Positions 40,471 to 59,783 of a stretch of DNA of 64,000 nt are shown in pieces (within the stretch, counting starts at the first letter, position 1; every line of letters starts with the position of its first letter). A program made the translations under genes and the position numbers. The stretch spans positions 62,001 through 126,000 of IMG/VR virus record IMGVR_UViG_3300044701_003953. One strand, written 5' to 3'. Under the pieces are notes generated by a model. That model saw only the letters and a program-made list of their open reading frames with translations, ran no database searches and was not told the DNA's origin.

Positions 40471-40785
40471 ATGAACGACGTCGACAAACTGATTGGAACC
40501 ATCCGCCAGGCCACTGATTACCAAACGAATCGTAAGATACTCAGGGAGAAGATACAGACTGAATTACATATCACCTACAATGGTGGTATGTTTTTAGTGA
40601 CCAGAGATCTCTTGAGCTTCCTAGCGACTTGGCCAGAACCTACACTTTATCTCGAAGACATATATGAGAACCCCATTGAGATCAACAGAGACGAATTACT
40701 GTATCAATGCCGCCAGAGGTATCAAGCAGTGATGAATTCCTGGCATCAACAACATGCTGAACTACGGAAAATCAGAAAAATCTAG
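40471..40785 (+). CDS. hypothetical protein
   Basis: 104-aa ORF at the head of the accessory operon, overlapping the next gene. Confidence 0.7.
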   Translation: MNDVDKLIGTIRQATDYQTNRKILREKIQTELHITYNGGMFLVTRDLLSFLATWPEPTLYLEDIYENPIEINRDELLYQCRQRYQAVMNSWHQQHAELRKIRKI

Positions 40786-42404: not shown

Positions 42405-42726
42405 AAACCTTCCCGAACTTGTCGAGTCGGAAGTGGAATATCGTCTTTATTACAACGAGGACGGTACTGTTTTATCAATGAGCTCGGGTGATTTTCCTGT
42501 TGAAGGAAAATATATAAAGATCGATAAAGAGATTTACGATCGGCCCAATTATTCGACAATGCGGGTGATCAATGGGAAACTAACCATACTTGAAAATGTT
42601 TCACATCATCGCAATGATCTATATCGCGGAGGCGATAGATTCCTCGTAGTCAAAGGACATGCCAACATATTAGTAGATGACACATACCAAGGAGAAACAG
42701 AAACATATGGCTTCAAGAATCATTGA
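42367..42726 (+). CDS. hypothetical protein
   Basis: 119 aa from ATG 42367; YRLYYNEDG motif; overlaps both neighbours. Confidence 0.65.
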   Translation: MNDELPALLEVFKNLPELVESEVEYRLYYNEDGTVLSMSSGDFPVEGKYIKIDKEIYDRPNYSTMRVINGKLTILENVSHHRNDLYRGGDRFLVVKGHANILVDDTYQGETETYGFKNH

Positions 42727-43639: not shown

Positions 43640-45045
43640 TGAATAAAGGCGACGAAGCAGTAGGCAACAAAAGCAAGTTCATGGCTTCAGCCGAGTGGAT
43701 GAAAGAACACCTCGGCGAAGGGTTCTGCTTGGCCAAATGGAAGCAGGTCAGCCTACACTTGCCCACAGGACTCAACAACTCCTGCTACCATCCTCCCTTG
43801 CACCACATCGATCCTGCGCCACTCAAAGATAATCCCGGCGCATTGCACAACACCGAGCACAAGAAACAACAGCGTGTTATCATGCTGAAAAACGAGCGTC
43901 CTGGTGAATGCCAATACTGCTGGAACATCGAAGACACCGGCAATCTCAGCGACAGACATTATCGCAGTGGCGAACCCTGGGCAGCCGAGGACTATGAAGC
44001 CATCCGTGCCTCCGCAGGCACCGAAGACTGGATTCCCAGTTATGTAGAAGTCAACTTCAATCATGCTTGTAATCTGGCCTGCTCGTATTGTAGCCCACAG
44101 TTTTCGTCGACCTGGCAATCGGAAGTAGACAAGTGGGGAGCCTGGCCTACGTCAACTCCACACAACGCACCCGAGCACTTCCAAGGTCGCAATCGTCCCA
44201 TCCCGCACAGCCAAGAGAATCCCTATGTGGATGCTTTCTGGGAATGGTGGCCACAACTGTATCCCAAGTTGAAACATTTCCGCATGACTGGCGGTGAACC
44301 ACTCATGGATCGAAATACCTACAAGGTGTTTGACTATGTGTTAGCCCTGCCCAACCCTGAGCTACATCTCAATGTCACTTCTAACTTCTCTGTGGAACCT
44401 AAACTGTTTGAGAAATATCTCGACTATGTGAAACGCTTGTGTAACACACAGATCGAACACTTCATGCAATATGTGAGCCTAGACACCGGCGAACCTCAGC
44501 ATGCCGAATACATCAGGCATGGGCTCAACTTCCGTCGCATGTGGGATTATGTACATCGCTATCTCGACGAGATCCCGTATCGCAACAGCCTCACATTCAT
44601 TATCACCATGAACAATCTGTCGGTCCTGGGCATACAACGACAACTGGAGTGGATCCTGGATCTGCGGCGCATGTATTCCAAGACCTATCAGCGTGTGTGG
44701 TTTGATACTCCATTGTTGCGCCAGCCTAAATGGCAGAGCCTACAGATACTTCCGCCAGTGTATGCTGACCGACTCGAGCGTGTGGCAGACTGGATGGAAC
44801 TAAACTTAGAAACGCCCGAGGATCCCTTCCACGGTTTCAAAGACTATGAAGTGCAACGCATCCGGCGCGACATCGCGTGGATGCGTGAAGGACAGAAACT
44901 GGATCACGACTACATAGTTGGACAACGTGCCGACTTCTATCGTTTCTTCAATGAACACGACAAGCGTCGTGGCACTGATTTTGAAAGGACTTTCCCTGAG
45001 ATGCGGGAATTTTGGCAGGAGTGCAGATACCATGCCCAACGATAA
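43633..45045 (+). CDS. radical SAM protein with N-terminal twitch-like domain (AKW subtype)
   Basis: FCLAKW...SCYHP...CQYC; CNLACSYC; TGGEP. Confidence 0.9.
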   Translation: MVMNKGDEAVGNKSKFMASAEWMKEHLGEGFCLAKWKQVSLHLPTGLNNSCYHPPLHHIDPAPLKDNPGALHNTEHKKQQRVIMLKNERPGECQYCWNIEDTGNLSDRHYRSGEPWAAEDYEAIRASAGTEDWIPSYVEVNFNHACNLACSYCSPQFSSTWQSEVDKWGAWPTSTPHNAPEHFQGRNRPIPHSQENPYVDAFWEWWPQLYPKLKHFRMTGGEPLMDRNTYKVFDYVLALPNPELHLNVTSNFSVEPKLFEKYLDYVKRLCNTQIEHFMQYVSLDTGEPQHAEYIRHGLNFRRMWDYVHRYLDEIPYRNSLTFIITMNNLSVLGIQRQLEWILDLRRMYSKTYQRVWFDTPLLRQPKWQSLQILPPVYADRLERVADWMELNLETPEDPFHGFKDYEVQRIRRDIAWMREGQKLDHDYIVGQRADFYRFFNEHDKRRGTDFERTFPEMREFWQECRYHAQR

Positions 45046-46117
45046 GTTTTGTGTTCGTCCTTTCATGCACAGTCTTGTTGACACCGAAGGGCGATTCAAA
45101 CCTTGTTGCCGTAGTCAAGTTGACACTGGATTTAATATCAAGTCACATACTGTTGAAGAATGGTGGAACAGCGAATATCTCAATGATTTCCGTGACAGGA
45201 TCAAAAGAAACGAATACAGCAAAGAATGTGACAGGTGCTATCGACAGGAACAGCAAGGATCAAAGAGCTTCCGCGAATACAGCAACGAACGGTGGCCAGA
45301 TGTCAAAACTACTAGAGAAAGACCAATCGATTGGGAGATACAGTTATCAAATCTTTGCAATTTGAAATGTTTGATGTGTAACCCACAATCCAGTAGCCAG
45401 TTCTTAGTAGAAGAAAATAAGCTATTTGGAAAAAAGTGGGATCAAACCAAATACGATTGGGATGCCAAAGACAACAGCAAGATACTCGAGATAATGCAAC
45501 AAAGCGAGAGTTTCATCCTACGAGGCGGAGAACCGTTTATGTTGCCGTGGGTAAAGGACATCATCTCATCGTTAGCAGATCGAAAAGAAATAATGATAGC
45601 TACCAACGGCACTCGGTTCGATCAAAGTTGGCTTGACGTCCTTTCGGGGCACGACATCAAGATTTGTCTGAGCCTTGACGGGCACGGAAAACTCAATCAT
45701 TACATACGCTATCCTAGTAAATGGAATGACATACTGGATAACATCAAATTGATGCGGAAGATCCCAGGTGTGAATCTTTTCGTGAACACCGTAGTCCAAA
45801 ATCTCAACGTGTTACACATCGACCGATTGTTAGACTGGACCAAGGGCGAAGAGTTATTTGTGCAATTCGATATACTAACTAAACCTAAATATCTAGAACC
45901 GTCGTGCTTACCTGCCGAGTTGGCTAAACTCGCACAAGACCGTCTGGGCAGAGTTGATCACCAATCTCAGAATGGGCTCGAAGGGATAATCAATACTTTA
46001 GATAATGCCACAGATGAGTATTGGGAAGAATTCGTGGAAACTATAACTATCAGAGATAGACATCGTGGCGTAGATATAGTAAACTATATACCCGAGATGG
46101 AGCCATACTTTGCCTAG
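45032..46117 (+). CDS. radical SAM protein with N-terminal twitch-like domain
   Basis: Start reassigned to ATG 45032 (AGGAG upstream); FCVRPF...PCC...CDRC; CNLKCLMC; GGEP; ATNGT; LSLDG. Confidence 0.9.
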   Translation: MPNDKFCVRPFMHSLVDTEGRFKPCCRSQVDTGFNIKSHTVEEWWNSEYLNDFRDRIKRNEYSKECDRCYRQEQQGSKSFREYSNERWPDVKTTRERPIDWEIQLSNLCNLKCLMCNPQSSSQFLVEENKLFGKKWDQTKYDWDAKDNSKILEIMQQSESFILRGGEPFMLPWVKDIISSLADRKEIMIATNGTRFDQSWLDVLSGHDIKICLSLDGHGKLNHYIRYPSKWNDILDNIKLMRKIPGVNLFVNTVVQNLNVLHIDRLLDWTKGEELFVQFDILTKPKYLEPSCLPAELAKLAQDRLGRVDHQSQNGLEGIINTLDNATDEYWEEFVETITIRDRHRGVDIVNYIPEMEPYFA

Positions 46118-47462
46118 ACTACATAATGAAACTGACCTAGAATTCCGGAAACGTGTGCTCGATTCTAAGAGTGCTAGTTTCTGTGGAGCCAAATGGTACA
46201 ACGCTACCATATGGTTAGGCTCCGGCATGACCACATCCTGTCATCACCCTCCTGCGCATTTCGTGCCAGTGGAGGCCATCCAACGTAACCCCAAGGCGCT
46301 ACATAACAGCGACGAAAAGAAAAACGACCGCGCCATGATGCAACGTGGCGAACGTCCACCCGGTTGTGAGTATTGCTGGAAGATCGAAGACATGGGTCGT
46401 GATGCTGTTTCAGACCGTGTCTATAAAAGCGTGATCTACACCGACGAGGAACTCAATGAAGCTTATCTATTACCCACCGCTGAGGACGCAAATCTACGCA
46501 CTCTCGAAATCAGTTTCGATCGTACTTGCCAATTGGCTTGTAGCTACTGTAATCCTGCTTTCTCTTCTACATGGGTTAAGGACATTAAAACCCGAGGGCC
46601 TTATATCGAGTTGGTTAGTGATGGTAGGAATCACTTCACTCATGATCACGCTAGTGCTCAACTTTATCGATACGGTGAAGTCAATCCGTATGTTGAGGCA
46701 TTTTTCCGCTGGTGGGAAACCGACCTACATAAGACGCTTAGAGAGTTACGGATCACCGGAGGAGAACCACTCATGTCCGGCTACACCTGGCAACTCATCG
46801 ACTGGTTCAAACAAAACCGCGGCAAGTCAAACACACGCCTAGCCATCAACTCCAACTTGGCTATGCCGTCGGATCGTATACAAGAACTCCTAGATGCTTG
46901 CGAGGGTATCGAACTGGATATCTATACTTCCAACGAAGCACTACATTCGCAGGCCGAATACATCAGAGACGGGCTCCAATGGCAACAATGGCAAACCAAC
47001 ATGCGTTTGTTGGCCTCCAGTGGTAGGCTACGGGGCTTACACAACATGTGTACTATCAACGCATTGTGTCTCGAATCATTGCCTGAGTTCTTGGATTTCT
47101 TGGTAGAGATGAAACGAGAGTTTGGCAGAGATTTCCCCAACTTCACGCTAAACATCCTGCGTTTTCCGTCGTTCCAAAGCCCTTTGGTGTTGCCTGATGA
47201 CATACGTGAACACCACAAGCAGAGACTAGTTGAGTGGATGGTCAAGCACAAAGGCCACAGCTATCTACATCAGCATGAGATAAACCATGTGCTAAGATTG
47301 ATAGATTATCTAGATGTAGTCAAGACTCCGCACCGCGAGACTTTTGAGCGTCCAGCCCTACACAACGACTTCCGTAAATTCTACGAACAATACGATCAGC
47401 GTAGGGGTAAAAATTTCCCCGAAACATTTCCTGGCCTAGCCGACTGGTATTCCACACTATGA
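46110..47462 (+). CDS. radical SAM protein with N-terminal twitch-like domain (AKW subtype)
   Basis: TTG start with GGAG; FCGAKW...SCHHP...CEYC; CQLACSYC; TGGEP. Confidence 0.9.
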   Translation: MPRLHNETDLEFRKRVLDSKSASFCGAKWYNATIWLGSGMTTSCHHPPAHFVPVEAIQRNPKALHNSDEKKNDRAMMQRGERPPGCEYCWKIEDMGRDAVSDRVYKSVIYTDEELNEAYLLPTAEDANLRTLEISFDRTCQLACSYCNPAFSSTWVKDIKTRGPYIELVSDGRNHFTHDHASAQLYRYGEVNPYVEAFFRWWETDLHKTLRELRITGGEPLMSGYTWQLIDWFKQNRGKSNTRLAINSNLAMPSDRIQELLDACEGIELDIYTSNEALHSQAEYIRDGLQWQQWQTNMRLLASSGRLRGLHNMCTINALCLESLPEFLDFLVEMKREFGRDFPNFTLNILRFPSFQSPLVLPDDIREHHKQRLVEWMVKHKGHSYLHQHEINHVLRLIDYLDVVKTPHRETFERPALHNDFRKFYEQYDQRRGKNFPETFPGLADWYSTL

Positions 47463-48790
47463 GTGATACAAAAGATTTCTACAACAAGGGCTACGACTAC
47501 AATAGTCGGGCACCTTATTTCGTCGAGCGCAAAGACTTGACACCCGAGCAGTGGCGCAAGCTCACGGAGAGCGATACCTTCTGTATGTTACCTTGGATGC
47601 ACATGCACGCCTTCCCAGATGGTCGTGCTTATCCCTGCTGTCTCAGCGAATACTTCCACCCCGTAGGCGATCTGCGCAAACACACCATGGAAGAAGTATG
47701 GAACCAAGAAAAGTATCGCACCATGCGTCAGAACATGCTCACGGATAAGCCATGTAAAGAATGTACTAAGTGCTATGAGCAAGAGAAGGCTGGATTCTTT
47801 TCTATGCGCAATGATGCCAACAGGAACTACGGGCATCATATCTCAGACATACATAAGACACAACCAGATGGAACACACCCCGACTTCAAGATCCGTTATT
47901 GGGACGTACGATTCAGCAATCTCTGTAACATGAGATGTCGTAGCTGTGGCCCTATCTTTTCGTCGAACTGGTTCAATGACCATGTCAAGATGTATGGCGT
48001 AGTGCCCGATGTACTCAAACGACCCATGGCCAGGGTAGAATATACTACCGGCGACGAGGATGGCATGTTGGCACAGATGGAGCCACATATCCCTTATCTC
48101 GAACAAGTCTACTTCGCAGGTGGCGAACCGCTGATCATGAAAGAGCACTACTACATGCTGGAGAAGTTGATCGAAGCCGGCAAGACTGATGTGCGACTGA
48201 TCTACAACACCAATTTCTCAGAACTGCGCTACAAAGACAAACATGTGTTTGAGTTCTGGAAACACTTCAAAACAGTGAATGTGGGCGCCAGCCTAGATGC
48301 TTCGGGCGCCCGGGCCGAGCTCATGCGCAAAGGCACTGAGTGGACGCAGACCGTGGACAACCGCCGCAGGATGATGGAGGAAGTGCCGCATGTGGACTTC
48401 TATGTCAGCGCCACGGTATCCTCGATGAATGTGCTACATGTGTTAGACTTCCATCGCGAATGGAGCGAACTGGGCCTGATCCGCCCCAAGGACTTCAATG
48501 TCAATATCTGCCAAAGTCCTGAATGGTACAGGATCGACATCTTCCCCGAAGCGTTCAAGCGAGAAGTCATCGAACCTGCTTACCGTAGACACATCGAGTG
48601 GCTTGATCCGCAGGACACGCTACGCCGTGCTACCACTGGATTCGAAAGCGCCATCAACTTCATGATGAGCACAGACAACAGCCATCTCTTGCCACGCTGG
48701 AGAGAAGAGACCGCCAAGTTGGATCGCGTGAGGGACGAAGACTTTTGGAAGACCTTCACAGAATTGGAGACACTACGTGACTCTGCCTAA
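47459..48790 (+). CDS. radical SAM protein with N-terminal twitch-like domain
   Basis: FCMLPW...PCC...CTKC; CNMRCRSC; AGGEP; YNTN; ASLD. Confidence 0.9.
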   Translation: MSDTKDFYNKGYDYNSRAPYFVERKDLTPEQWRKLTESDTFCMLPWMHMHAFPDGRAYPCCLSEYFHPVGDLRKHTMEEVWNQEKYRTMRQNMLTDKPCKECTKCYEQEKAGFFSMRNDANRNYGHHISDIHKTQPDGTHPDFKIRYWDVRFSNLCNMRCRSCGPIFSSNWFNDHVKMYGVVPDVLKRPMARVEYTTGDEDGMLAQMEPHIPYLEQVYFAGGEPLIMKEHYYMLEKLIEAGKTDVRLIYNTNFSELRYKDKHVFEFWKHFKTVNVGASLDASGARAELMRKGTEWTQTVDNRRRMMEEVPHVDFYVSATVSSMNVLHVLDFHREWSELGLIRPKDFNVNICQSPEWYRIDIFPEAFKREVIEPAYRRHIEWLDPQDTLRRATTGFESAINFMMSTDNSHLLPRWREETAKLDRVRDEDFWKTFTELETLRDSA

Positions 48791-49991
48791 GACCATCTGT
48801 ATGCTACCATGGATGAGCATCGAGACTTCGCCAATGGGTACAGCTCGGCCTTGCTGTCTTGCTGACGAAGAGATCACTGATGCCAATGGTGTCAAATATG
48901 ATCTCAATGTCAGCACACTGCGCGAAGTCTATGACAGCGAATACATGCAGGAACTGAGACGTCAATTCCGTCGAGGTGAAAAACCCAAGACATGTAATCG
49001 TTGCTGGGAAGAGGAAGCCGCTGGAAGGACCAGCAAGCGTATACACAGCCGTGTACGACTCAAAGAACTCTATGCCCAAGTGGACTGGGAAAATGATCGA
49101 CCTGACCAACTCTGGTTCGTAGATCTCAAACTAGGTAACATTTGTAATCTCAAATGCCGTATCTGCGGATCCTGGAGTTCCAGCAAGTGGGCTGAAGAAG
49201 AGATGAACTACTTGCCCAAGACCGTGGACAAGAAAACACACATCGCTTACACCTGGCTCAAGCAAGGACAATGGCCCCGCAAGACCGAGACCTTCTGGGA
49301 TGACCTGCGCGGACTCTTGCCCAACATTCGCTACTTTGAATTCACTGGTGGCGAACCCTGGTTGATCCAAGAGCACATCGACCTGCTCAAGTTCGCTGTG
49401 GAGACCGGCGACAGTCATCACATCGACATACACTACAACACCAATGCCACACAATGGCCCGACGATCTGGTAGAGATCTGGAAAGACTTCGGACGGGTGG
49501 ACATCGCCTTTAGCATCGACAATGTGGGAGAGCGTTTCGAGTTTGAGCGTTTCCCTGCCGACTGGAACAAAGCCAATGAGATCGTGGATGCCGTTCATGC
49601 GTTACAAAAGACGCACACCAACATCACTACCCAACTGTGCTTCACGCTCAACATACAGAATGTTTACTACCTCGATGAGTTGCTGGCCTGGGCAGACACC
49701 AAAGGCTTTGACAACATCTACTTCAACATGCTACATAGTCCCAGCCGCATGAGCATACAGTCCATGACGCCAGTGGCGCAAGAGTTGGTAGTTGGTAAAC
49801 TACGCAACACCGATTGGCGCACTGAATACCAACGCGAAGTTGATAATGTCATCAACTTCATTGAGAACGGTGCAGGTAGCGACGGGCGTGAGTTTTGCCG
49901 TCTCATGAAGCAGACTGACGCTTACCGTAAGCAAGACTTCGCCACCACACACCCTGAGATAGCAAAGGCCATGGGATATGAACAAACCTGA
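48777..49991 (+). CDS. radical SAM protein with N-terminal twitch-like domain
   Basis: GTG start with GGAG; ICMLPW...PCC...CNRC; CNLKCRIC; TGGEP; YNTN; FSID. Confidence 0.9.
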   Translation: MTLPKTICMLPWMSIETSPMGTARPCCLADEEITDANGVKYDLNVSTLREVYDSEYMQELRRQFRRGEKPKTCNRCWEEEAAGRTSKRIHSRVRLKELYAQVDWENDRPDQLWFVDLKLGNICNLKCRICGSWSSSKWAEEEMNYLPKTVDKKTHIAYTWLKQGQWPRKTETFWDDLRGLLPNIRYFEFTGGEPWLIQEHIDLLKFAVETGDSHHIDIHYNTNATQWPDDLVEIWKDFGRVDIAFSIDNVGERFEFERFPADWNKANEIVDAVHALQKTHTNITTQLCFTLNIQNVYYLDELLAWADTKGFDNIYFNMLHSPSRMSIQSMTPVAQELVVGKLRNTDWRTEYQREVDNVINFIENGAGSDGREFCRLMKQTDAYRKQDFATTHPEIAKAMGYEQT

Positions 49992-51282
49992 ACATCGTCC
50001 CGCGACACTTTGTATGGCACCGTGGACTCACACATATCTGAGTCCACAGACTGAGCGCCGGATGTGCTGTGCTAGTCGTGAACCTGCACAGAACTTCCAG
50101 CAGTATATTGATACAGCTGCTGGTACAGGAAAATATATTCCCATTACCTTGGACGAGCATTGGAACGGCGAGCACATGAAGAGTGTGAGACGCCGAATGA
50201 TGACCGGCGAGACTTTGCCCGAATGCGATGTGTGTAACAGCAAGCTCTTGAACACAGACGTTTACCGTAGTTATTTTAACCATCTTTTCGGACATAAGTA
50301 TAATAGCATATGGGACTCTACTGACGAGACCGGAAATACTACTATGCAGCCAGTGAGTTGGGATTACAGGTTTTCCAACTTGTGTAACTTCAAATGCAGA
50401 ACCTGTGGAGACATGTTAAGCAGTGCTTGGGAGTCTGAGCAACGCCAACACAACATGATCGACTGGACCAATCCCAAGAATCAGTGGATGGTCCCTGAAA
50501 TCAAAAAGCAAATTGAAGGTTTTCAAAATGAACAGGTAGAGGCCGAGTTTTCACAGGCCGTTGAGGAGCACCGAGTCGAAGAAGTCTACTGGGTTGGCGG
50601 CGAGCCACTCATGTACGAACAGCATTGGCGATACATGAAACGTATCGTTGACTTGGGAGATGGACAAAATGTTTACGCTAGATACAACACAAATCTTAGT
50701 AGGATTGATTATAGAGGTATTAATCTTTATCGGGATATTCTTAGTAGGTTACGGGATTGGCAAATCTGTGCAAGCATCGACGGATCGGGCCGAATTGGTG
50801 AATATATTCGAACAGGTCTCGATTTTAGTCGGTGGCTTGAGAACTTCAAACAAGGAGTTGAAATCAGTACTCATAAACGCCAGATGCGTATTGACTTCAC
50901 TCTTACACTCCCGGGTCTCTTCGAAGTTCGACAGATGACCCAGCTCGGGCAGGAACTGGGTGTTGACACATTAGCCAAAGTCATATTCAGTTTCTCGCCC
51001 GACATCATACTCAGTCCATTGGCCTTGCCAAGGGAGTTACTAGAACCCTGGTTAGACGAACTCATACCCGATACACATGGCGCCATGCAGGATATTTTGG
51101 TACAACTCAAAGCACGACCTACGTTCCAAGAACAGTGGCCCGATCAGTGGCAAGCGGGTCTTGCGAAAGGCAAGGCTCGTGTGTTAAAATTAGAACAGAT
51201 CAGAAATGACGATTACACCATGGACGACATATTAAGCCAGCGTCCAGAGGTACATAAATGGTGGAGAAACATCGATGCTTGA
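49978..51282 (+). CDS. radical SAM protein with N-terminal twitch-like domain
   Basis: LCMAPW...MCC...CDVC; CNFKCRTC; VGGEP; YNTN; ASIDG. Confidence 0.9.
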   Translation: MNKPEHRPATLCMAPWTHTYLSPQTERRMCCASREPAQNFQQYIDTAAGTGKYIPITLDEHWNGEHMKSVRRRMMTGETLPECDVCNSKLLNTDVYRSYFNHLFGHKYNSIWDSTDETGNTTMQPVSWDYRFSNLCNFKCRTCGDMLSSAWESEQRQHNMIDWTNPKNQWMVPEIKKQIEGFQNEQVEAEFSQAVEEHRVEEVYWVGGEPLMYEQHWRYMKRIVDLGDGQNVYARYNTNLSRIDYRGINLYRDILSRLRDWQICASIDGSGRIGEYIRTGLDFSRWLENFKQGVEISTHKRQMRIDFTLTLPGLFEVRQMTQLGQELGVDTLAKVIFSFSPDIILSPLALPRELLEPWLDELIPDTHGAMQDILVQLKARPTFQEQWPDQWQAGLAKGKARVLKLEQIRNDDYTMDDILSQRPEVHKWWRNIDA

Positions 51283-51463: not shown

Positions 51464-52531
51464 ATGAAAAAAGTCAAGATAGTACTGAGAGATCCTCTCA
51501 ACAAGCAGGATCAGATCGATTACGACATCGAAGTCGAAGATCATGAAATGGCCGTGCGCTGGCACGATGCTTTATGTGATCTGCTTCGTAACGACAATTA
51601 CTTAGAAAAGAATTTTTGTTTTTTGGGCTTTCCTAACACAGCTAGGAATCTCGATTTCCTTTGCCGCGAGCTAGACTGGGCCAAGACGAAGATAAATTCT
51701 TTCTTCGACGATTATCGTATAGAAGAAGAATACCGTCCTGATACGCTGAGACATGGCCTCGATCCCAATCAGGATCTGATGAACTTGTTACACAATCATT
51801 TTGAAGTGTTACAAGGAACAGTATGGGGACTCAGCGAATACTACAAGAGAGCCGACTACGAAACCAAGTTTGCTATCCGCCAACTCAACAACATCTGCCA
51901 CGAAGCAGAAAGCCTAATGTTGAGCCAACGCAAACAAGTAGAAGCACCCGAGTGGGTGCGTCCTAGCCAGATAACTACGTTCTTAAACGCACCTCGTTTC
52001 GAGTATCCTCGAGAGTATAAACGTACATTCAACGAAACACGTTACGACCGTACCTTTGGTACAGTATATCAGCATTGGACACAGATCGGCAAGACCTTGT
52101 ACGAAGTCTATATCGACGAGAACGGTGCCGATATCGATCAAGCCACCTGCGAGGCCATCACGCACCTGCGATACTATTCGGGAGAATTTGATATCGAATG
52201 GGCACGTGATGTCACACACGGTGGCGAGTATCCGTGGCATACCAAACGTATGACTGGATTCCGCGAGTGGCTAGTCCGCAACGGGTTTGATCTCGACGAT
52301 GTGGAATACAACTACGGGTATCACTCAGTGGGGCAAGTCGATCTGCGTGGTGGCTTTGGCACGGATGACTATCAGACGATATGGAATACATTAGGACAGC
52401 ATCTCGACATAGTAAAGATCGAAACCGCTGGATTTTCGTCTACTTACGATTACTGCTGGACCGACGAAGATTATTATCAACAACAGATCGATAGATTGAA
52501 ACCTGGTTATGATTATAGTAGCAGGCGGTGA
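51464..52531 (+). CDS. hypothetical protein
   Basis: 355 aa abutting the previous stop; LHNHFE and QLNNICHEAE motifs; no confident domain. Confidence 0.7.
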   Translation: MKKVKIVLRDPLNKQDQIDYDIEVEDHEMAVRWHDALCDLLRNDNYLEKNFCFLGFPNTARNLDFLCRELDWAKTKINSFFDDYRIEEEYRPDTLRHGLDPNQDLMNLLHNHFEVLQGTVWGLSEYYKRADYETKFAIRQLNNICHEAESLMLSQRKQVEAPEWVRPSQITTFLNAPRFEYPREYKRTFNETRYDRTFGTVYQHWTQIGKTLYEVYIDENGADIDQATCEAITHLRYYSGEFDIEWARDVTHGGEYPWHTKRMTGFREWLVRNGFDLDDVEYNYGYHSVGQVDLRGGFGTDDYQTIWNTLGQHLDIVKIETAGFSSTYDYCWTDEDYYQQQIDRLKPGYDYSSRR

Positions 52532-53078
52532 CAGTTTCGTCTGGGGCAGCGAACTCCCAGATAGCCCGCACGGTGGGCCTAATGGATACAGTAGATCTAC
52601 TTTTCCTGCGCTACTGGCCCGCGGTTACAGTTATACCTGCTTGGCCTATCCCGGTATTGGTAACAAAGAAATCTCACAGAGAGTGCGGGATTTTTTATCA
52701 TCTTCAGAAGTCAACGATTTGATAATGATAGTCTGTTGGACATGGCCCACACGAGATGGAGTATTGGATAGCGACGAGGATATATTGGCATTACAACAGG
52801 CACTCGAAGATCGTGGAATACCTTATATTTTTACTTGCGCGGATAACTGTATAAAGACCGAGAACAAAGCGATAAAATGGGATGAATGGTTTTGGTTCCC
52901 GCCTGCGCATATCACTGAGCTATATGGGACTCACAGCCCAAGAGGTTTTTACCAGTGGGCGAGAGAAAATAAATATTCAGTAGGACCCGAGTGCCATCCA
53001 TTAGTTGACGCACATCAAGATGCCGCAAAGTTAATCCAAGGAAAATTCGATGAACTGGTTAAAAAGATTGATCAATAA
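52509..53078 (+). CDS. SGNH/GDSL-like hydrolase or acyltransferase
   Basis: GGDSF near the N-terminus, PGIGN, C-terminal HPLVDAH. Confidence 0.65.
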   Translation: MIIVAGGDSFVWGSELPDSPHGGPNGYSRSTFPALLARGYSYTCLAYPGIGNKEISQRVRDFLSSSEVNDLIMIVCWTWPTRDGVLDSDEDILALQQALEDRGIPYIFTCADNCIKTENKAIKWDEWFWFPPAHITELYGTHSPRGFYQWARENKYSVGPECHPLVDAHQDAAKLIQGKFDELVKKIDQ

Positions 53079-53151
53079 GATCCGATCAGAAATACAATAC
53101 CGTAAAAAACTCAAAGAAATGCGAAAGCGCGATCCTTTCATTTATAAATGA
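53050..53151 (+). CDS. 33-aa basic microprotein (not in ORF track)
   Basis: MNWLKRLINKIRSEIQYRKKLKEMRKRDPFIYK*; AAGGA upstream; ATGA overlap with the next gene. Confidence 0.65.
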   Translation: MNWLKRLINKIRSEIQYRKKLKEMRKRDPFIYK

Positions 53152-53702
53152 TATTAGTAAATGGCGATAGTTTCACTGCCGGAGAAGAAAGCACTGTAGC
53201 ATGGCCGGACCTTGTGCCCGATACCGTGAACATAGCGGTGTCTGGAGCTGGCAACGATCATATCGTCACTAGCACGATCGTCCACGTCGAAACGCACGAT
53301 GACGTCGATCATGCTATAATAGCATGGACCACACCACATAGGATAACGATCAGTGGAAAACATCTTACTCCCACTAGCCAGAGGAAATACGGAAAGTTAG
53401 TAGACGAGGTATTCCGTGACTGGGACGAAGATTGGGCCTGGAGGAAATTCCGAGCCGAAGTGGCCGCATTACATGGTTATCTCGAACACAAAGGTATCCC
53501 ACATGTGTTTGTGAGCACATTTGGGATACCCTCTAATACTATACCTGACTGCTTGTACTGGCTGGGGTGGGGAACAGAAGGCATGGTGGAATGGATGGGC
53601 GATTGCCCCAAAGGCCCAGGTGGGCATCCTTTAGAACTTGGACATCAAAGAATAGCAGGAAAAATCAATGAACATATTAGGAATATCGGCTGGATTTCAT
53701 GA
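53148..53702 (+). CDS. SGNH/GDSL-like hydrolase or acyltransferase
   Basis: NGDSF, NIAVSGAGN, GHPLELGHQRIA. Confidence 0.7.
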   Translation: MILVNGDSFTAGEESTVAWPDLVPDTVNIAVSGAGNDHIVTSTIVHVETHDDVDHAIIAWTTPHRITISGKHLTPTSQRKYGKLVDEVFRDWDEDWAWRKFRAEVAALHGYLEHKGIPHVFVSTFGIPSNTIPDCLYWLGWGTEGMVEWMGDCPKGPGGHPLELGHQRIAGKINEHIRNIGWIS

Positions 53703-55197
53703 CGCTGCCGCGAGTCTAGTAGACAAAGACGGCAATATCATGTTCGCTGGCCACAGTGAACGTTACAGCAAGAGCAAGAACGATGCCAACATCTGTCCTG
53801 GGCTGCTGACTGATATTCCTGTCAAAGTGGATCATATCGCTTATTACGAAAAGCCATGGCTGAAACAAACACGTCAATTATATTCAGGACAAGGTATCGA
53901 GTGGGGTAAACTGACCACCGATGGTATATTGGTAGATCAACTCGGGGACTGGATCTATCAACAAAACCCCGGGTTTAATCCTCATCGAGAAGTGTATTGG
54001 GATTGTGGTTTGCCTGAGATCAGTAGCTACCGCCATCACCTTAGTCATGCTGCCGCAGGATTCCAGACCAGCCCCTATCAAGAAGCCACGGTGGTAGTGT
54101 GTGACGCTATCGGCGAATGGGACACAGCTTCGATCTATCATGCTTGGTATGACGATAAAGGTCGTGCCCGATACAAGAAACTATGGGGCCAACGCTATCC
54201 GCATAGCCTAGGCATGTTCTACTCGGCGTTCACTAAGCGCCTAGGATTGAAGCCAATGGACGAAGAATACATACTCATGGGCATGGCTGGTTGGGGCAAA
54301 AGTACCTGGTTCAATCGTATCTTTGATGAACAAGTGGACGACATCGCGGAATTAACATTCAAAAACAATCTACATCTAGGCCTAGACGACAATTACCTGG
54401 ATGCGGCCCGCGACGAAGACCTAGCAGCCAGCGTACAAGAGATCACTGAGTGGGCGGTGTGCAGACTCATGGAACGTGCTCGTATGTTAGGTAGTAGCGA
54501 CAATCTCGTTTACATGGGCGGTGTGGCGCTCAACTGCTTGGCTAATCGTTTGCTAGGCAAATACTATTCTAACATCTGGATCATGCCAAACCCAGGTGAT
54601 GCTGGCAGCAGCCTTGGTGCCGCTGCTCTTGCCTATGGCAAAAAATTAAACTGGCAAGACGCTTATCTAGGACATGTGATACCAGGACCTTATCCAGTAA
54701 AAGACTTGCTAGATGAGTTACTAACTAATAAAATAGCGGGTGTGGCATCAGGTGCCGCAGAATTTGGTCCACGTGCTTTAGGTAATCGTAGCCTACTAGC
54801 AGACCCGCGTGGAGAAGATATAAAGGATCGTGTCAATGAAATTAAGCGACGTCAAAAATTTAGACCCTTTGCCCCAGTCATACTGGCCGAGATGGTCGGT
54901 GACTACTTTGATATGCCACCTGGCTGGACTGACAGCGATTATATGCAAGTCGTCGCTAAGTGTCGCCGTCCTGATCTTTTTCCTGCTATATGTCATATTG
55001 ATGGCACCAGCAGAGTACAGACAGTTCCGAAAGATTCGAGATCGGGAATCCGTCAACTCTTAGAGCAATGGTATGTGATGACAGGATGTCCTATGTTGTT
55101 GAATACCAGCCTCAACATCCGTGGAGAGCCAATGGTCAACGATCGCGACGACGCCGATCGTTTTGAAAATTTATATAAAGTGAGAGTTTGTTCATGA
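53668..55197 (+). CDS. O-carbamoyltransferase, NodU/CmcH/TobZ family
   Basis: HDAAA, HHLSHAA, DAIGE, GGVALNC, PGDAG, EFGPRALGNRS, FRPFAP, HIDGTSRVQTV, LLNTSLN. Confidence 0.93.
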   Translation: MNILGISAGFHDAAASLVDKDGNIMFAGHSERYSKSKNDANICPGLLTDIPVKVDHIAYYEKPWLKQTRQLYSGQGIEWGKLTTDGILVDQLGDWIYQQNPGFNPHREVYWDCGLPEISSYRHHLSHAAAGFQTSPYQEATVVVCDAIGEWDTASIYHAWYDDKGRARYKKLWGQRYPHSLGMFYSAFTKRLGLKPMDEEYILMGMAGWGKSTWFNRIFDEQVDDIAELTFKNNLHLGLDDNYLDAARDEDLAASVQEITEWAVCRLMERARMLGSSDNLVYMGGVALNCLANRLLGKYYSNIWIMPNPGDAGSSLGAAALAYGKKLNWQDAYLGHVIPGPYPVKDLLDELLTNKIAGVASGAAEFGPRALGNRSLLADPRGEDIKDRVNEIKRRQKFRPFAPVILAEMVGDYFDMPPGWTDSDYMQVVAKCRRPDLFPAICHIDGTSRVQTVPKDSRSGIRQLLEQWYVMTGCPMLLNTSLNIRGEPMVNDRDDADRFENLYKVRVCS

Positions 55198-55622
55198 TCA
55201 AAAAAATATTGATAATGGGATTACCCGGATCAGGTAAAAGCACATTAGCTGAACCCTTCGCCAAGCTCATCGGTGGGGTATGGCTCAATGCCGACGCAGT
55301 CCGCACCGAATACGACGATTGGGATTTCTCTCCCGAAGGCCGCATGAGGCAAGCCATGAGGATGCGATATCTCGCCGACGGTGTCGCCAAGGCAGGTAAG
55401 ATAGCAGTGGCCGACTTTGTATGTCCTACAGAAAAAGCTCGTGCTGAGTTTGGAGCAGATTATGTGATCTGGATGGACACTATCAAAGAAGGACGCTTCG
55501 AAGACACCAACAAGATGTTTGAACCGCCATCAAGATTCGATTATCATGTTGAAAGTTGGTTCACAGACACGCACGAACAACTAGCTAAGGTAGTAACCAA
55601 ATATATCGGAGATATCAAATGA
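55194..55622 (+). CDS. adenylylsulfate (APS) kinase-like P-loop kinase
   Basis: GLPGSGKST, LNADAVR, DFSPEGR, ADFVCP, FEPP resemble CysC; ATGA coupling to the carbamoyltransferase. Confidence 0.72.
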   Translation: MIKKILIMGLPGSGKSTLAEPFAKLIGGVWLNADAVRTEYDDWDFSPEGRMRQAMRMRYLADGVAKAGKIAVADFVCPTEKARAEFGADYVIWMDTIKEGRFEDTNKMFEPPSRFDYHVESWFTDTHEQLAKVVTKYIGDIK

Positions 55623-56032
55623 GTTTCAATCCACAAAAACCCACTACGCAGATGCTCGGAAGGTGGCAACCGTGGCATCCTGGCCATACTGCCTTGTTCA
55701 AGAAAGCCTTGCTAGAGACTGGGCAGGTATGTATACAGATCCGTGATGTAGGAGGCATCGTTGGAGCAGATGCCGGCGGTGGCCGCACAGTAGCACAAAC
55801 AGACAATCCTTTTGATTACGACACAGTGGTCGCTAACATCAAGACAGCGTTAGCCGCTGAGGGATTTGACTACGGCGAAGAGTATATCATCATGCAAGTT
55901 CCAAACATCGTGGACATCAGTTATGGACGTGGTGTGGGCTACACGTTCACACAGCATGACCTCGGCGAAGAGATCCACGCGATCAGTGCCACACAGATAC
56001 GAGCACAGTTGAGGGCCGAAGGTAAGTTGTAA
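55619..56032 (+). CDS. small HxGH nucleotidyltransferase (cytidylyltransferase-like)
   Basis: GRWQPWHPGH, NPF, ISATQIR. Confidence 0.8.
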   Translation: MSFNPQKPTTQMLGRWQPWHPGHTALFKKALLETGQVCIQIRDVGGIVGADAGGGRTVAQTDNPFDYDTVVANIKTALAAEGFDYGEEYIIMQVPNIVDISYGRGVGYTFTQHDLGEEIHAISATQIRAQLRAEGKL

Positions 56033-56244
56033 TGGATTCAGCAAAACGTAGTCTAGCTAAAACGATCAGTTGGCGCGTCACTGGAAGTGGCGCTACGTTC
56101 TTGATCACTTTTTTAGTTTCCGGCGATTTGAAAATCGCCGGGTCAGTGGCATTGATACAGATAACCGCTAACACCCTGCTTTATTTTTTACACGAACGTG
56201 TCTGGAATAGCATCACTTGGGGACGGAAGTTACCGCCATCGTGA
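56032..56244 (+). CDS. DUF2061-like small membrane protein
   Basis: RSLAKTISWR...LYFLHERVWNSITWG. Confidence 0.78.
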   Translation: MDSAKRSLAKTISWRVTGSGATFLITFLVSGDLKIAGSVALIQITANTLLYFLHERVWNSITWGRKLPPS

Positions 56245-57355
56245 GATTTTCTTTCAGTTCTTTCCAACCATGATGTAGCAATCTTCCGCTACTGATTAGA
56301 TCGTTGTTGTGTGCTAATGTATCCCGCATCTCCAACAACATATCTTTTAGTTCTTCTAAAGACTTAGATGAAATATATTTCACGATTTCTGATACCTCTT
56401 GTAGACGTTTGATCGGATCCTCGATGGAATCGTAACTTTCGTCCCACCACTTGTCGAAGGTTTCAAATCCATAGCTTTTTAGATACTTTAGATTGTTTAC
56501 GCATCCTACTAGAACAAATGGTTGTTGTAGCATCACAGGCTTGAAGATTTTTTCTGTTAAATGAGATTTTTTATCCCAGAAACAAGTTTCGGTCACGACA
56601 TGCAAGAAACTTTCCATGTTTTCTTTCATTGACCCTAGAGTCATGCTTCCATTTGGTATATATTTGTCGTCTGTGGAATCGATGCGTAACGGGAATTTTA
56701 TTTTATCCAGGGTTCGTATAGTCTCTTCAGCATAGTCTGGAAGGATATCGTATCTTGATATTGACTCTAATATATTTTCTCTGTAATGACCATATATCGG
56801 ACAGTCGTGGCTGTAACTGATGTGCCCTTGCTCGATAAGATCTCTTTTCGCTAATTCCGATACTAGGAATGAGCGGTATACTCGAGCTCCTCCGGTCAAT
56901 CTGTTAAACGTGATAAACTTTTTAGTGATAGTACGATCTTCAATTGGCATCAGGCTTTCATCAAATTCGTAACCACGATACCAGTCCGAAACCGCGAAGA
57001 TATGGAAAAAAGAATATGCTTCCCTGAATTTGAATTTTTCTAATAGGATATTTTTTTCTTGACTTTCGAGTTCTGTATTAAGTAAAATAATCCTATCGGG
57101 ATCTGTTATGTTTGTAAACTCCATGACATGGGAAAACAATCTTTCGTTGAATCCAGATATCAATGGTTCTTGATCGTAGCAAAGCAATAAAGGTCCTCGG
57201 TCATCGGGACCAAGATCCGGCCGATCATCTGCTAGTATTTCAAGGTTTTCTGGTTCGGTTGTTCCAAATGGATGTAAGTATGCGACGCGAGGGTCGTCGC
57301 ATATAGTCTTAGCGAAGTTCCAGACATTCTGGTAGTGCTTATGGATATTATACAT
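56213..57355 (-). CDS. putative glycosyltransferase-like protein (GT-B C-terminal-type motif)
   Basis: FLHVVTET...LTEKIFKP...PFVLVG...GFETF..WWDESYD, reminiscent of the E-N-S...TEK motif of GT10-type enzymes; opposite strand to its neighbours; looks AT-rich. Confidence 0.5.
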   Translation of the reverse strand: MYNIHKHYQNVWNFAKTICDDPRVAYLHPFGTTEPENLEILADDRPDLGPDDRGPLLLCYDQEPLISGFNERLFSHVMEFTNITDPDRIILLNTELESQEKNILLEKFKFREAYSFFHIFAVSDWYRGYEFDESLMPIEDRTITKKFITFNRLTGGARVYRSFLVSELAKRDLIEQGHISYSHDCPIYGHYRENILESISRYDILPDYAEETIRTLDKIKFPLRIDSTDDKYIPNGSMTLGSMKENMESFLHVVTETCFWDKKSHLTEKIFKPVMLQQPFVLVGCVNNLKYLKSYGFETFDKWWDESYDSIEDPIKRLQEVSEIVKYISSKSLEELKDMLLEMRDTLAHNNDLISSGRLLHHGWKELKENLTMAVTSVPK

Positions 57356-59783
57356 GTTTGATGTGTTTTATTTTGGCGAAAAGCCAAATCTATTTGAGTT
57401 TGAAAAACCTGCTGAGTCTATAGCAGATGCCGCTGGCATGAGTCGAACTCGTCTGTGCTGGTATATTTATGGGTCTAATGATTACACCAAATTTGATTTC
57501 TCATGGCAACCGGCACCGTGGGACGAAGGATACATCAATGTGTTTGGAAGCCAATGGCAGAAAAACAGCGGTGTCTATTTGTTGAACCCCGCCACCGTAC
57601 AAAATAATCAATTGAAATTCGTCGATGAACAGACGGCACCGCGTTTGATACACGACACAGATTTATGGTTCATCCCCGATCACATCGAAACGTCAACGGT
57701 AGATCAGACATGGCATCCCGACCCACTGGATCCTCCTTACATCTATCACTTCCCCAGCCAACATCAAAGTTCGTCGGGAGTGACTTATACTGTGCCCGGT
57801 GCGACACATATCAAATTAGTTAGTGACTTTGTAGTTACCTCTATCGCACAATCTGAACGCTGGACGGTGCCCGAAGAGATTGATGCCACCAAAGTGGACT
57901 TTACCTGGCATCCTAGCGCACTAGACCCTCCTTACGTCTATCACTTCCCCAGCGAATGGCAGGAGAGTTCGGGCCTGGAATATCACACACCCGGCGCCAC
58001 TGAGATCAAGATAGCCACAGACTCGCCTTACTTCGAAGAAGCCGTGAGCCGTGTGTTGGATATCTTCTTCGTAGATCACTACAATAATCAAAGTGCCCAA
58101 CGCTGGGAGAAGTTAGTAGCACGTTATCCACACGCACAAAAGATACGATTCGCTAACACTGAAATAGATACTATACGACGTTGCTGTAACAGATCCACTA
58201 CTAATCGTTTCTGGGTGGTATCTAGCGAATGCGTATACGACGACTTTGATTTCGCTTGGCATCCTGAGTCATGGCAGCGTTTCATGACACATGTGTTTGG
58301 TAGCCAATGGCAGAAATGGTCTGCTACATACCTGATCAACAAGTCAGAGTTTGATCGTAACGCCAAGTGGGCGAAATCCCTGGAAGAGTTTCCCAACCTC
58401 AACTTCGTGCGCAACCAACCTGTCGTCATCCCCGACGACTTATATGACATCTATTACGTCGACCACGGCAATCAAGAAAGTCGGGATCAGTTCAATCGAC
58501 TACGAGAAGATCATCCCGATATGCGTACTACACGATTCGTGGACAACTATCTCGATACATTGAAACGTATCATGAGCACAGCCGAGACGGAATATGTGTG
58601 GGTGATAAGTTCCATCTGCGATTACTCAGTGTTTGATTTCTCTTGGCAACCCGAACCCTGGCAAGCCGAAATGATCCATGTGTTTCCCAGCAATTCAGAA
58701 AAGCGCGGCGACACGTTCTACATACATGTGGAGTCTTTTAAGCGACAGATGGCCGATCTTGAAATCCTGGATTGGTTCAATGTCATCAACTACACCAACG
58801 AACAATGGGTACAGCGTTTCCCCGTGCCCACCGTGACCTATGACGGTGACAGCCTAGTGGATGTAGTGCGTGATCATGACTTTGGTTCCGATATCTATGT
58901 CAAGTTCCGTTACTCGAAAAATGGTGACATAGACTATACACCCTGTATCTGGCGTGCCAAAGATCGAGCTGTACATAGCCTCAGCGTCAACAATGCTACG
59001 GCACTCGTGCCCAGGGATGTCAAGCAGTATCCCTTGGTCCAGATGTATGACTATCCAGAAATCGACAAGACCAAACGCACCATGTTGTTGGGCAGGCCGT
59101 TAGACGTGATATTCATCAGCAACGGTGAAACAGAAGCCGAGCGGTGGTATAAACACCTAGAAGACACACTTTTTGACAAGTATCTAGGCGAAATAACAGC
59201 CAAGCGAGTCATGAATGTTGACGGGCGTACTCGCGCCTATCAAGCAGCCGCAGAAGCTTCAGAAACAGACTGGTTTTTCGCTGTGTTCGCTAAACTAGAA
59301 GTTGTGCCCACTTTCGATTGGTTTTGGCAACCCGATTATTTCCAGGAAGCCAAACACTACATCTTCAATGCCCGCAATCCCGTCAATGGCCTGGAATATG
59401 GACACATGGGCGTGATCGCTTACAACAAGAGATTGGTGCTAGAAACCAATGACCCGGGACTTGACTTTACATTGAGCCGTGCGCATGAAGTAGTGCCAGT
59501 ATTGTCAGCGATCTCACACTTCAACTCTGATCCTTGGATGACTTGGAGGACCGCGTTCCGTGAGGTGCTTAAACTACGTCACTATCTCGACATCAATCCT
59601 ACATTAGAGACCGAGCATAGGCTAGAGATTTGGTGTACTCGCGCCGAGGGAGAAAATGCCGAATGGAGCTTGCGTGGAGCTAACGACGCTATCAGCTACT
59701 ATGAGGAAGTGAGAGGACATCTACCAGATCTTATGAAGAGCTTCGATTGGGCCTGGCTTCGCGACATGTATCAACGAAGATAG
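57354..59783 (+). CDS. multi-repeat glycosyltransferase-like protein
   Basis: Recurrent FDFxWxPxxW units; C-terminal domain aligns with 42707..43639 (AKRV, ARNxxNGLxYG, WRxxFRE). Confidence 0.6.
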   Translation: MFDVFYFGEKPNLFEFEKPAESIADAAGMSRTRLCWYIYGSNDYTKFDFSWQPAPWDEGYINVFGSQWQKNSGVYLLNPATVQNNQLKFVDEQTAPRLIHDTDLWFIPDHIETSTVDQTWHPDPLDPPYIYHFPSQHQSSSGVTYTVPGATHIKLVSDFVVTSIAQSERWTVPEEIDATKVDFTWHPSALDPPYVYHFPSEWQESSGLEYHTPGATEIKIATDSPYFEEAVSRVLDIFFVDHYNNQSAQRWEKLVARYPHAQKIRFANTEIDTIRRCCNRSTTNRFWVVSSECVYDDFDFAWHPESWQRFMTHVFGSQWQKWSATYLINKSEFDRNAKWAKSLEEFPNLNFVRNQPVVIPDDLYDIYYVDHGNQESRDQFNRLREDHPDMRTTRFVDNYLDTLKRIMSTAETEYVWVISSICDYSVFDFSWQPEPWQAEMIHVFPSNSEKRGDTFYIHVESFKRQMADLEILDWFNVINYTNEQWVQRFPVPTVTYDGDSLVDVVRDHDFGSDIYVKFRYSKNGDIDYTPCIWRAKDRAVHSLSVNNATALVPRDVKQYPLVQMYDYPEIDKTKRTMLLGRPLDVIFISNGETEAERWYKHLEDTLFDKYLGEITAKRVMNVDGRTRAYQAAAEASETDWFFAVFAKLEVVPTFDWFWQPDYFQEAKHYIFNARNPVNGLEYGHMGVIAYNKRLVLETNDPGLDFTLSRAHEVVPVLSAISHFNSDPWMTWRTAFREVLKLRHYLDINPTLETEHRLEIWCTRAEGENAEWSLRGANDAISYYEEVRGHLPDLMKSFDWAWLRDMYQRR
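57666..58015 (+). repeat. ~65-aa (195-nt period) internal duplication
   Basis: VDQTWHPDPLDPPYIYHFPSQHQSSSGVTYTVPGATHIK versus VDFTWHPSALDPPYVYHFPSEWQESSGLEYHTPGATEIK. Confidence 0.85.

Follow-up and report, generated by a model that had tools for sequence, protein, structure and literature searches.

A marine jumbo phage carries three tightly coupled small genes, encoding a shortened APS-kinase-like protein, a 137-residue nucleotidyltransferase (NTase) and a small DUF2061 membrane protein, that most likely form a minimal module for synthesis of the sulfate donor PAPS, although the sulfurylase step is inferred from gene context and the kinase reaction is predicted from homology. The same kinase-NTase pair is common in SAR11 bacteria and may be their missing ATP sulfurylase. 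The genes lie in a 64,000-nucleotide stretch of a phage record, which we refer to as the window; complete relatives are about 342 kb. The genes and their upstream neighbour are as follows.

53668-55197, plus strand: NodU/CmcH-type carbamoyltransferase (509 aa), regarded as context for the module and not as part of the sulfate-activation core.
55194-55622, plus strand: miniature APS-kinase-like P-loop kinase (142 aa from the ATG at 55194; 144 aa from the TTG at 55188), predicted reaction APS + ATP -> PAPS + ADP.
55619-56032, plus strand: minimal HxGH / ISxTxxR nucleotidyltransferase (137 aa), derived from NadM-type NMN adenylyltransferases (NMNATs), inferred reaction ATP + sulfate -> APS + PPi.
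56032-56244, plus strand: DUF2061 small membrane protein (70 aa), an accessory third member with an inferred role as membrane partner or anchor of the APS kinase.

The kinase ORF was called from the TTG at 55188 but the ATG at 55194 matches the N-termini of homologues. Read directly from the DNA, the junctions are ATGA for carbamoyltransferase/kinase, ATGA for kinase/NTase and TAATG for NTase/DUF2061, so that four genes are translationally coupled. The arrangement is far more than chance. The kinase is adjacent to the NTase in 72 of 80 related viral loci and in 65 of 80 bacterial loci, and the two are fused in 80 of 80 loci of another phage group and in 7 bacterial loci. The NTase has 6819 relatives by word search and 905 representative clusters, and the window protein matches the C-terminal half of PHROG 10255, whose N-terminal half is the kinase. 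The carbamoyltransferase is assigned by profile matches (Pfam Carbam_trans_N 1.8e-37, Carbam_trans_C 3e-48; PHROG 1601 at 2e-89) and a homologue lies within the locus in about 20 of 80 related viral loci. A near-identity DNA search of the phage collection found nothing.

The identity of the kinase is well supported by homology. Pfam APS_kinase (PF01583) scores 33.8 bits against a cutoff of 21.1, but the match covers only profile positions 5-91 of 152, and the score against the NCBIfam equivalog TIGR00455 is far below its cutoff (25.9 against 138.7). In a family-profile search of the PDB the ~26 hits at E <= 2e-7 (5e-16 to 2e-7) are, but for two large multi-domain proteins, APS kinases or APS-kinase(-like) domains of sulfurylase fusions. 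The AlphaFold model (pLDDT 92.7) has a predicted APS-kinase fold over the whole chain: the top 17 Foldseek ranks are all APS kinases with TM 0.79-0.84 and E about 1e-8, while the next family, gluconate kinase, scores TM 0.60-0.72. Within the family the motifs GxxGxGK[ST], NxDxxR, FSxEGR and DFxCP are invariant. In the window protein GLPGSGKST is present, and LNADAVR, DFSPEGR and DFVCP align to LDGDxxR, FSxEDR and SFISP of canonical CysC; the second Asp, both Arg and the Phe are invariant in the family, while the first Asp of DGD is Asn and the Ser of FISP is Cys. The motifs aligned by HMMER match over the first ~85 residues, whereas the C-terminal third does not align by sequence. At 136-145 aa the kinase is 30-60 residues shorter than solved APS kinases, from which we infer a shortened lid.

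The origin of the NTase is different. The preliminary description had proposed that the small enzyme may be a minimal ATP sulfurylase, by comparison with the ~400-aa Sat enzymes, but it is not a shrunken Sat. The window protein, which carries GRWQPWHPGH and ISATQIR motifs, has no Pfam hit, no ATP sulfurylase appears among the PDB profile hits up to E = 10, and a PF01747 search of 45 genomes that carry the NTase does not pick it up. It is a single minimal domain without the PUA-like N-domain of Sat. Instead the family profile matches the NMNAT MJ0541 (1f9a) at 2e-11 and Francisella NadM (2qjt) at 5e-10, and the GRxQPxHxGH, NPF and IS[AG]TxIR motifs are shared with these enzymes and the NadR NMNAT domain. 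The NCBIfam archaeal NMNAT match (3.9e-5) is nevertheless far below cutoff (PRK01153 23.3 bits against 127; TIGR01527 17.3 against 181.2). Profile positions 77-92 (16 residues) stand opposite residues 68-108 (41 residues) of 1f9a, so that about 25 residues of the ~165-180-aa core between strand 3 and the C-terminal SGTxxR motif are missing, and the model (pLDDT 91.2) has only three beta-strands. The family also has its own invariant residues, R42 in VRD and Y102-G103-R104 in the motif YGR[DG]VGY. Foldseek gave no hit for this model below E = 0.001. A wider structural search with VIA-align placed NadM first (Z 10.5), followed by PPAT (Z 9.5) and the Thermus ATP sulfurylase 1v47 (Z 8.4 over 119 residues), with other ATP sulfurylases at Z 5.5-6.4. 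The structure, including H20-P-G-H23, is thus compatible with sulfurylase chemistry but shows a shared HUP superfamily only and cannot discriminate the acceptor, since NMNAT, PPAT and ATP sulfurylase all score Z 8-10. No sulfate-binding residues could be assigned. Sulfurylase activity would therefore be a case of analogy and remains inferred.

The descent of the NTase raises the possibility of a NadR-like NAD+ salvage or reconstitution module, in which the kinase would phosphorylate nicotinamide riboside and the NTase would act as an NMN adenylyltransferase, of use to phages against NAD+-depleting defence. JGI automatic annotation indeed names the NTase and its relatives NMNAT, and in Xylella phage Salvo and Stenotrophomonas phage DLP_6 the fused gene sits among early and DNA-metabolism genes rather than glycan genes. 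However, no NadR kinase domain appears among the sequence matches of the kinase or the Foldseek matches listed, part of the NMNAT core is missing, and no NAD-pathway neighbour recurs in 240 loci, whereas links to sulfotransferases, CysQ, AprBA and DUF2061/CysC do. A third of SAR11 genomes lack the NTase, so it is not their essential NMNAT. We consider this reading improbable.

Gene context in several separate settings points instead to APS/PAPS chemistry. In phages carrying the fused form, sulfotransferases lie beside the gene in loci L004-L008, in 29 of 80 loci by BLAST, at least 19 of them within 1.2 kb and about 8 overlapping the gene start, and in 30 of 80 loci by HMM, with Pfam confirmation. 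Of 50 whole records 22 have a sulfotransferase; in records of 80-177 kb the only hit lies within 5 kb, and in the complete 177-kb genome it is under 1 kb away. DLP_6 also has a Sulfotransfer_2 match (35.5 bits), but in Salvo, which carries the fused gene, none was found among the Sulfotransfer_2 and Sulfotransfer_3 families searched. The split form of the window's lineage has no adjacent sulfotransferase. No Sulfotransfer_1 or Sulfotransfer_3 was found in the window's record, in 39 related split-form viral records, or by HMM in 80 split-form loci. The preliminary description was right that no sulfotransferase is recognisable in the window, yet the same phage record has a Sulfotransfer_2 gene about 34 kb downstream. 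This match is weak (24.7 bits against a cutoff of 22) and is the only recognisable candidate consumer of PAPS. We also tested the 380-aa neighbour (56213-57355, minus strand) as a hidden sulfotransferase, but it belongs to a phage-only family with only a faint GT10-like lead and the idea was rejected. ORFs at 40754-43639, inspected by eye, showed no sulfotransferase PAPS-binding motifs and look glycosyltransferase-like, with DxD-type motifs.

In bacteria, CysQ (TIGR01331 at 294.8 against a cutoff of 228.8) lies directly upstream of the kinase in 9 loci, and AprA (TIGR02061, 990 bits), AprB and a 265-aa protein are convergent just downstream in 7 loci, in SAR11-type genomes. Of 45 pair-carrying genomes 27 have AprA, 2 have Sat and 0 have CysD, whereas of 20 SAR11 genomes without the NTase 1 has AprA and 0 have Sat (Fisher p = 2.4e-5). 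This correlation is not corrected for phylogeny and many of the genomes are incomplete. The commonest SAR11 neighbourhood (enoyl-CoA hydratase, CoA-binding protein, dimethylglycine-dehydrogenase-like) is not sulfur-specific. The pair is present in 135 of 201 sampled SAR11 genomes, and the literature states that most SAR11 lack ATP sulfurylase although they have AprAB, that their sulfate pathways are incomplete, and that aprAB is under strong purifying selection. In SAR11 the pair probably handles the APS made by AprBA.

The adjacency and co-occurrence with aprBA also allow a dissimilatory direction, in which the NTase, in the bacterial homologues and possibly in infected hosts, would convert AprBA-made APS plus PPi to ATP plus sulfate for sulfite detoxification, with the kinase as a side branch. 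The phage NTase is 50-62% identical to SAR11 and SAR86 copies, and the phage copy would then be an auxiliary metabolic gene for host organosulfur catabolism rather than for sulfation. This is a variant with the same chemistry and opposite net flux rather than an exclusive alternative. We find it unlikely as the main role, since the phage contexts (sulfotransferases, carbamoyltransferase, glycan genes) point to PAPS use and no aprBA was seen in the viral loci examined.

The DUF2061 protein matches PF09834 over the full profile (positions 1-52 of 52; 75.6 bits against a cutoff of 23.1; 4e-21) and lies within 1.2 kb of the NTase in 25 of 80 and 15 of 80 viral loci, in variable order and sometimes between the two enzymes. 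Interestingly, DUF2061 is also found directly upstream of canonical cysC-cysD in two Bacteroidota genomes (G437 and G421) and in a Mesorhizobium nodH-nodP-nodQ locus. The latter recalls rhizobial Nod-factor decoration by NodPQ, NodH and NodU, where sulfate activation is likewise combined with carbamoylation of a glycan, although NodPQ is of CysDN/CysC type, while here the adenylyltransferase is unrelated and the carrier is a phage.

In one locus (L171) the kinase and DUF2061 occur without the NTase, so that the sulfate link is firmest for the kinase. One could imagine a genuine APS kinase working on host-made APS, with DUF2061 as its partner, next to an NTase that adenylylates or cytidylylates another phospho-acceptor such as a sugar phosphate, polyol phosphate or 4'-phosphopantetheine, or a pair making another 3'-phospho-ADP-X compound by analogy with PPAT plus dephospho-CoA kinase. 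The structural match to PPAT, the generic HUP character of the NTase (Pfam CTP_transf_like hits in relatives), the CoA-related SAR11 neighbours and the glycan-building island of the window would fit this view. Against it, the NTase is almost never found without the kinase and is often fused to it, which suggests consecutive steps, and pair-carrying AprA-positive SAR11 lack any other ATP sulfurylase. The deletion of the segment that probably holds the NMN pocket in its NMNAT relatives favours a very small acceptor. No sugar kinase or sugar-phosphate context recurs, and we found no gene-context support for the sugar or polyol activation that the preliminary description gave as its alternative. 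This possibility appears unlikely but is the strongest of the alternatives.

Taken together, comparative genomics best supports the reading preferred in the preliminary description, that of an APS kinase with a minimal ATP-sulfurylase-like enzyme supplying PAPS, and we hold it with moderate confidence. The NTase, keeping the ATP-binding HxGH and ISxTxxR motifs, would transfer AMP from ATP to sulfate, and the kinase would phosphorylate the 3'-OH of the resulting APS, pulling the unfavourable first step forward. The predicted two-step chemistry is that of animal PAPS synthase (PAPSS1/2) and of other Sat-CysC fusions such as Aquifex 2gks, with a homologous kinase domain, and the kinase-first order of the fused relatives is probably also that of PAPSS. 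The transferase half (120-137 aa rather than about 400) is not homologous to the Sat/PAPSS sulfurylase family beyond the shared HUP fold, and in the window the two halves are separate, overlapping genes with a third membrane-protein gene. DUF2061 may place PAPS synthesis at the membrane where surface glycans are built. In this phage the PAPS would feed sulfation of a cell-surface or virion-associated glycan made by the surrounding island of carbamoyltransferase, radical-SAM enzymes, glycosyltransferase-like proteins, a DegT aminotransferase and an epimerase.

If our hypothesis were correct the NadM-derived NTase would be a third, analogous class of ATP sulfurylase besides Sat and CysDN, and together with the lid-trimmed kinase it would form the smallest known PAPS synthase, of about 280 residues in total, attractive for in-situ PAPS regeneration in biocatalysis. 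It would also be the ATP sulfurylase that lets SAR11, the most abundant marine heterotroph, process the APS made by AprBA. Marine and freshwater phages would spread it widely as an auxiliary gene for sulfating surface glycans, as a self-contained module and not just as single cysC auxiliary genes, and DUF2061 would gain a first functional assignment as a dedicated membrane partner of APS kinases. This wider view is possible but tentative. Complex prediction for kinase and NTase gave no result (score 0.00), which is evidence neither for nor against binding. Among representative NTase architectures we also noted fusions to partial chorismate synthase, DHQS_C or UCH domains, which are likely assembly or gene-call chimeras because the partner domains are truncated.

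The 207,520-bp IMG/VR virus record from which the window (bases 62001-126000) derives is rated 59% complete by CheckV, and close relatives reach 342 kb with terminal repeats, so this is a marine jumbo phage. Three small ORFs were found on the + strand at the site of interest:
55188/55194-55622 (+), a P-loop kinase
55619-56032 (+), a 137-aa nucleotidyltransferase (NTase) with GRWQPWHPGH and ISATQIR motifs
56032-56244 (+), a 70-aa DUF2061 protein
Reading the junctions directly from the DNA showed ATGA overlaps between the upstream carbamoyltransferase and the kinase and between the kinase and the NTase, and TAATG between the NTase and DUF2061, and four genes are therefore translationally coupled. 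This confirms the preliminary description, which had noted three small coupled genes directly after the carbamoyltransferase. The ATG at 55194, the start given there, fits the N-termini of homologues better than the TTG at 55188.

To characterize the kinase we first compared it with family models. Pfam gives APS_kinase above threshold, but only over the first 90 residues, and the NCBIfam equivalog cutoffs are missed by a wide margin. A profile built from 31 family members and searched against all PDB sequences returned ~26 hits at E <= 2e-7 that are, but for two large multi-domain proteins, APS kinases or the APS-kinase(-like) domains of sulfurylase fusions (E 5e-16 to 2e-7), with other P-loop proteins following from E ~1e-4. 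In this alignment LNADxVR, FSxEGR and DFVCP correspond to LDGDxxR, FSxEDR and SFISP. The AlphaFold model (pLDDT 92.7) matches APS kinases at TM 0.79-0.84 in Foldseek ranks 1-17. The protein is 30-60 residues shorter than solved APS kinases and its C-terminal third does not align by sequence, which we interpret as a shortened lid, although this is an inference. Taken together we consider with good confidence that the kinase is an APS kinase.

The NTase gave no Pfam hit. A family profile of 48 sequences found archaeal/NadM-type NMN adenylyltransferases (1f9a at 2e-11; 2qjt at 5e-10) and no ATP sulfurylase. The predicted structure (pLDDT 91.2) has only three beta-strands. Foldseek placed NMNAT first (TM 0.66), and an exhaustive VIA-align search gave NadM at Z 10.5, PPAT at 9.5, MJ NMNAT at 8.8, Thermus ATP sulfurylase at 8.4 and NadR at 8.2. 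By descent, then, the protein is a truncated NadM relative in which about 25 residues between strand 3 and the C-terminal ISxTxxR motif are missing. The family has its own invariant residues, notably R42 (VRD) and the YGR[DG]VGY loop. The fold fits any small HUP nucleotidyltransferase and cannot by itself name the acceptor. This ancestry leaves open a NadR-like NAD salvage role for the pair, which we consider improbable.

Several observations indicate that the kinase and the NTase form one functional unit. PHROG 10255 is a 230-position profile whose first half is matched by the kinase and whose second half is matched by the NTase. Among 905 representative clusters many are 250-280-aa fusions with the kinase first and the NTase second. 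One representative, a 395-aa protein (P0215, at positions 785-1972 of its locus L170), additionally carries a DUF4118 membrane domain, providing a second, independent link of the pair to the membrane. By HMM-based counts the kinase is adjacent to the NTase in 72 of 80 split-form viral loci, adjacent or fused in 65 of 80 bacterial loci, and fused in 80 of 80 loci of a second phage group. DUF2061 lies within 1.2 kb in 25, 2 and 15 of these loci, respectively, sometimes between the two enzymes and sometimes after them, as it does here. In L171, a locus from a relative of the window phage (positions 5592-6216), carbamoyltransferase, kinase and DUF2061 are followed by a dCMP deaminase with no NTase between or beside them, and the kinase and DUF2061 can therefore travel without the NTase. 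An alternative in which a genuine APS kinase is paired with an NTase that has another acceptor remains possible but unlikely.

We next asked whether the gene neighbourhood points to sulfur nucleotides. In T4-like contigs found through their DUF2061 genes the order is sulfotransferase(s), fused kinase-NTase, DUF2061. Of 80 fused-form phage loci, 29 (BLAST) or 30 (HMM) carry a sulfotransferase within 8 kb; at least 19 lie within 1.2 kb and about 8 overlap the start of the fused gene. Pfam confirms these sulfotransferases. In whole records, 22 of 50 have a Sulfotransfer_3 hit, and in the records whose coordinates were converted the hits lie within 14 kb. In records of 80-177 kb the single hit is within 5 kb, and in a complete 177-kb genome it is under 1 kb away (rough chance product 3e-6, not corrected for relatedness).

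In bacteria the NTase is common in SAR11, SAR86 and other marine bacteria and is present in 135 of 201 sampled Pelagibacteraceae genomes. In 9 loci cysQ (PAP phosphatase, TIGR01331 above cutoff) lies directly upstream of the kinase, and in 7 loci aprA, aprB and a gene for a 265-aa protein lie convergent immediately downstream. In most SAR11 genomes (loci L110-L151), however, the pair sits between a dimethylglycine-dehydrogenase-like gene or an M24 peptidase and an enoyl-CoA hydratase plus a CoA-binding protein, and in 8 loci an SBP56-family gene is nearby. Of 45 pair-carrying genomes, 27 have AprA, 2 have Sat and 0 have CysD, while of 20 SAR11 genomes lacking the NTase 1 has AprA and 0 have Sat (Fisher p = 2.4e-5, not corrected for phylogeny). 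A mainly dissimilatory, reverse-sulfurylase role of the pair would be a variant of the PAPS-synthesis reading, and we consider it improbable.

DUF2061 itself is also found beside sulfate-activation genes. In Bacteroidota it is rare (7 of 121 genomes), and in 3 of the 5 genomes examined it sits on the same strand directly beside canonical sulfate-activation genes, twice as DUF2061-cysC-cysD. The latter arrangement was found in the Bacteroidota genomes G421 (contig C8, 43216-44691) and G437 (contig C2, 517403-519079), DUF2061 being a tandem double domain in G421 and in the genomes G089 and G409. This operon link seems not to be discussed in the papers we found. In Mesorhizobium DUF2061 lies in the nod locus with nodH, nodP and nodQ (10.1101/2022.04.26.489235). 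A Caulobacter copy is Fur-regulated, so not every DUF2061 need be sulfate-linked.

In the window itself, the island around the trio also encodes the carbamoyltransferase, a DegT aminotransferase and an epimerase/dehydratase, together with the following:
43633-51282 (+), six tandem radical-SAM/SPASM paralogues of 399-470 aa, in four of which the SPASM iron-sulfur domain lies N-terminal to the radical-SAM core, an unusual order
52509-53078 and 53148-53702 (+), two small paralogous proteins without a Pfam hit that begin with a GDSF motif (GGDSF and NGDSF), which suggests GDSL/SGNH-type esterases or acyltransferases
56213-57355 (-), a 380-aa protein of a phage-only family, convergent with and overlapping the end of the DUF2061 gene by 32 nt, with only a faint GT10 (fucosyltransferase-like) lead
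57354-59783 (+), an 809-aa protein of no Pfam family with about six repeats of a motif like FDFxW[QH]PxPW...HxF(P/G)S, homologues of which recur near the trio in relatives
It looks like a glycan-tailoring island. No Sulfotransfer_1 or Sulfotransfer_3 was found in the window's record, in two ~342-kb relatives, or in 39 related fragments. One 208-aa ORF about 34 kb downstream of the trio and outside the window (minus strand, about 150.4-151.1 kb of the same genome; L252:1108-1734 in our locus extract) just passes the Pfam Sulfotransfer_2 threshold (24.7 against 22). It carries IPKNASTYL and FAFVRDPVDRWVSGF motifs, and a relative has two homologues. The ORF lies next to a radical-SAM-like fragment and may mark a second glycan-tailoring island. 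Stenotrophomonas phage DLP_6 also combines a fused gene with a distant Sulfotransfer_2. In Xylella phage Salvo neither Sulfotransfer_2 nor Sulfotransfer_3 was found, in a search that did not include Sulfotransfer_1. A Salvo gene annotated as cysteine dioxygenase (gp24; 1396-2091 of locus L001) lies about 3.5 kb upstream of the fused kinase-NTase and could be another hint of sulfur metabolism.

Several separate kinds of neighbourhood thus support that the module concerns APS/PAPS. That the NTase is the sulfate adenylyltransferase is an inference. It rests on the obligate pairing or fusion of the NTase with the kinase, in what appears to be the domain order of PAPS synthase, and on the need to pull a sulfurylase step that is likely to be unfavourable forward by immediate phosphorylation. 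It rests further on the loss of the acceptor-side segment of its NMNAT ancestors, which suits a very small acceptor, and on the absence of any other sulfurylase in AprA-positive SAR11 that carry the pair. Against it stand its NMNAT ancestry, the lack of assignable sulfate-binding residues, and the absence of adjacent sulfotransferases in the window's own lineage. We regard the full reading of the module as a mini PAPS synthase as only somewhat more likely than not. Public annotations call the parts ‘kinase’, ‘adenylylsulfate kinase’, ‘NMN adenylyltransferase’ or ‘hypothetical’. No paper describing this pair or a NadM-like ATP sulfurylase was found in the literature we could search, which is incomplete, so that prior description cannot be excluded. 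PAPS synthesis is itself known; on our reading it would differ here in being built from a non-orthologous, minimal transferase, with a new membrane partner.

Elsewhere in the window, at 18976-33126 (+), we noted a single 4716-aa ORF flanked by other very large ORFs of 1116-1121 aa, presumably encoding a giant structural or fibre protein of this jumbo phage.
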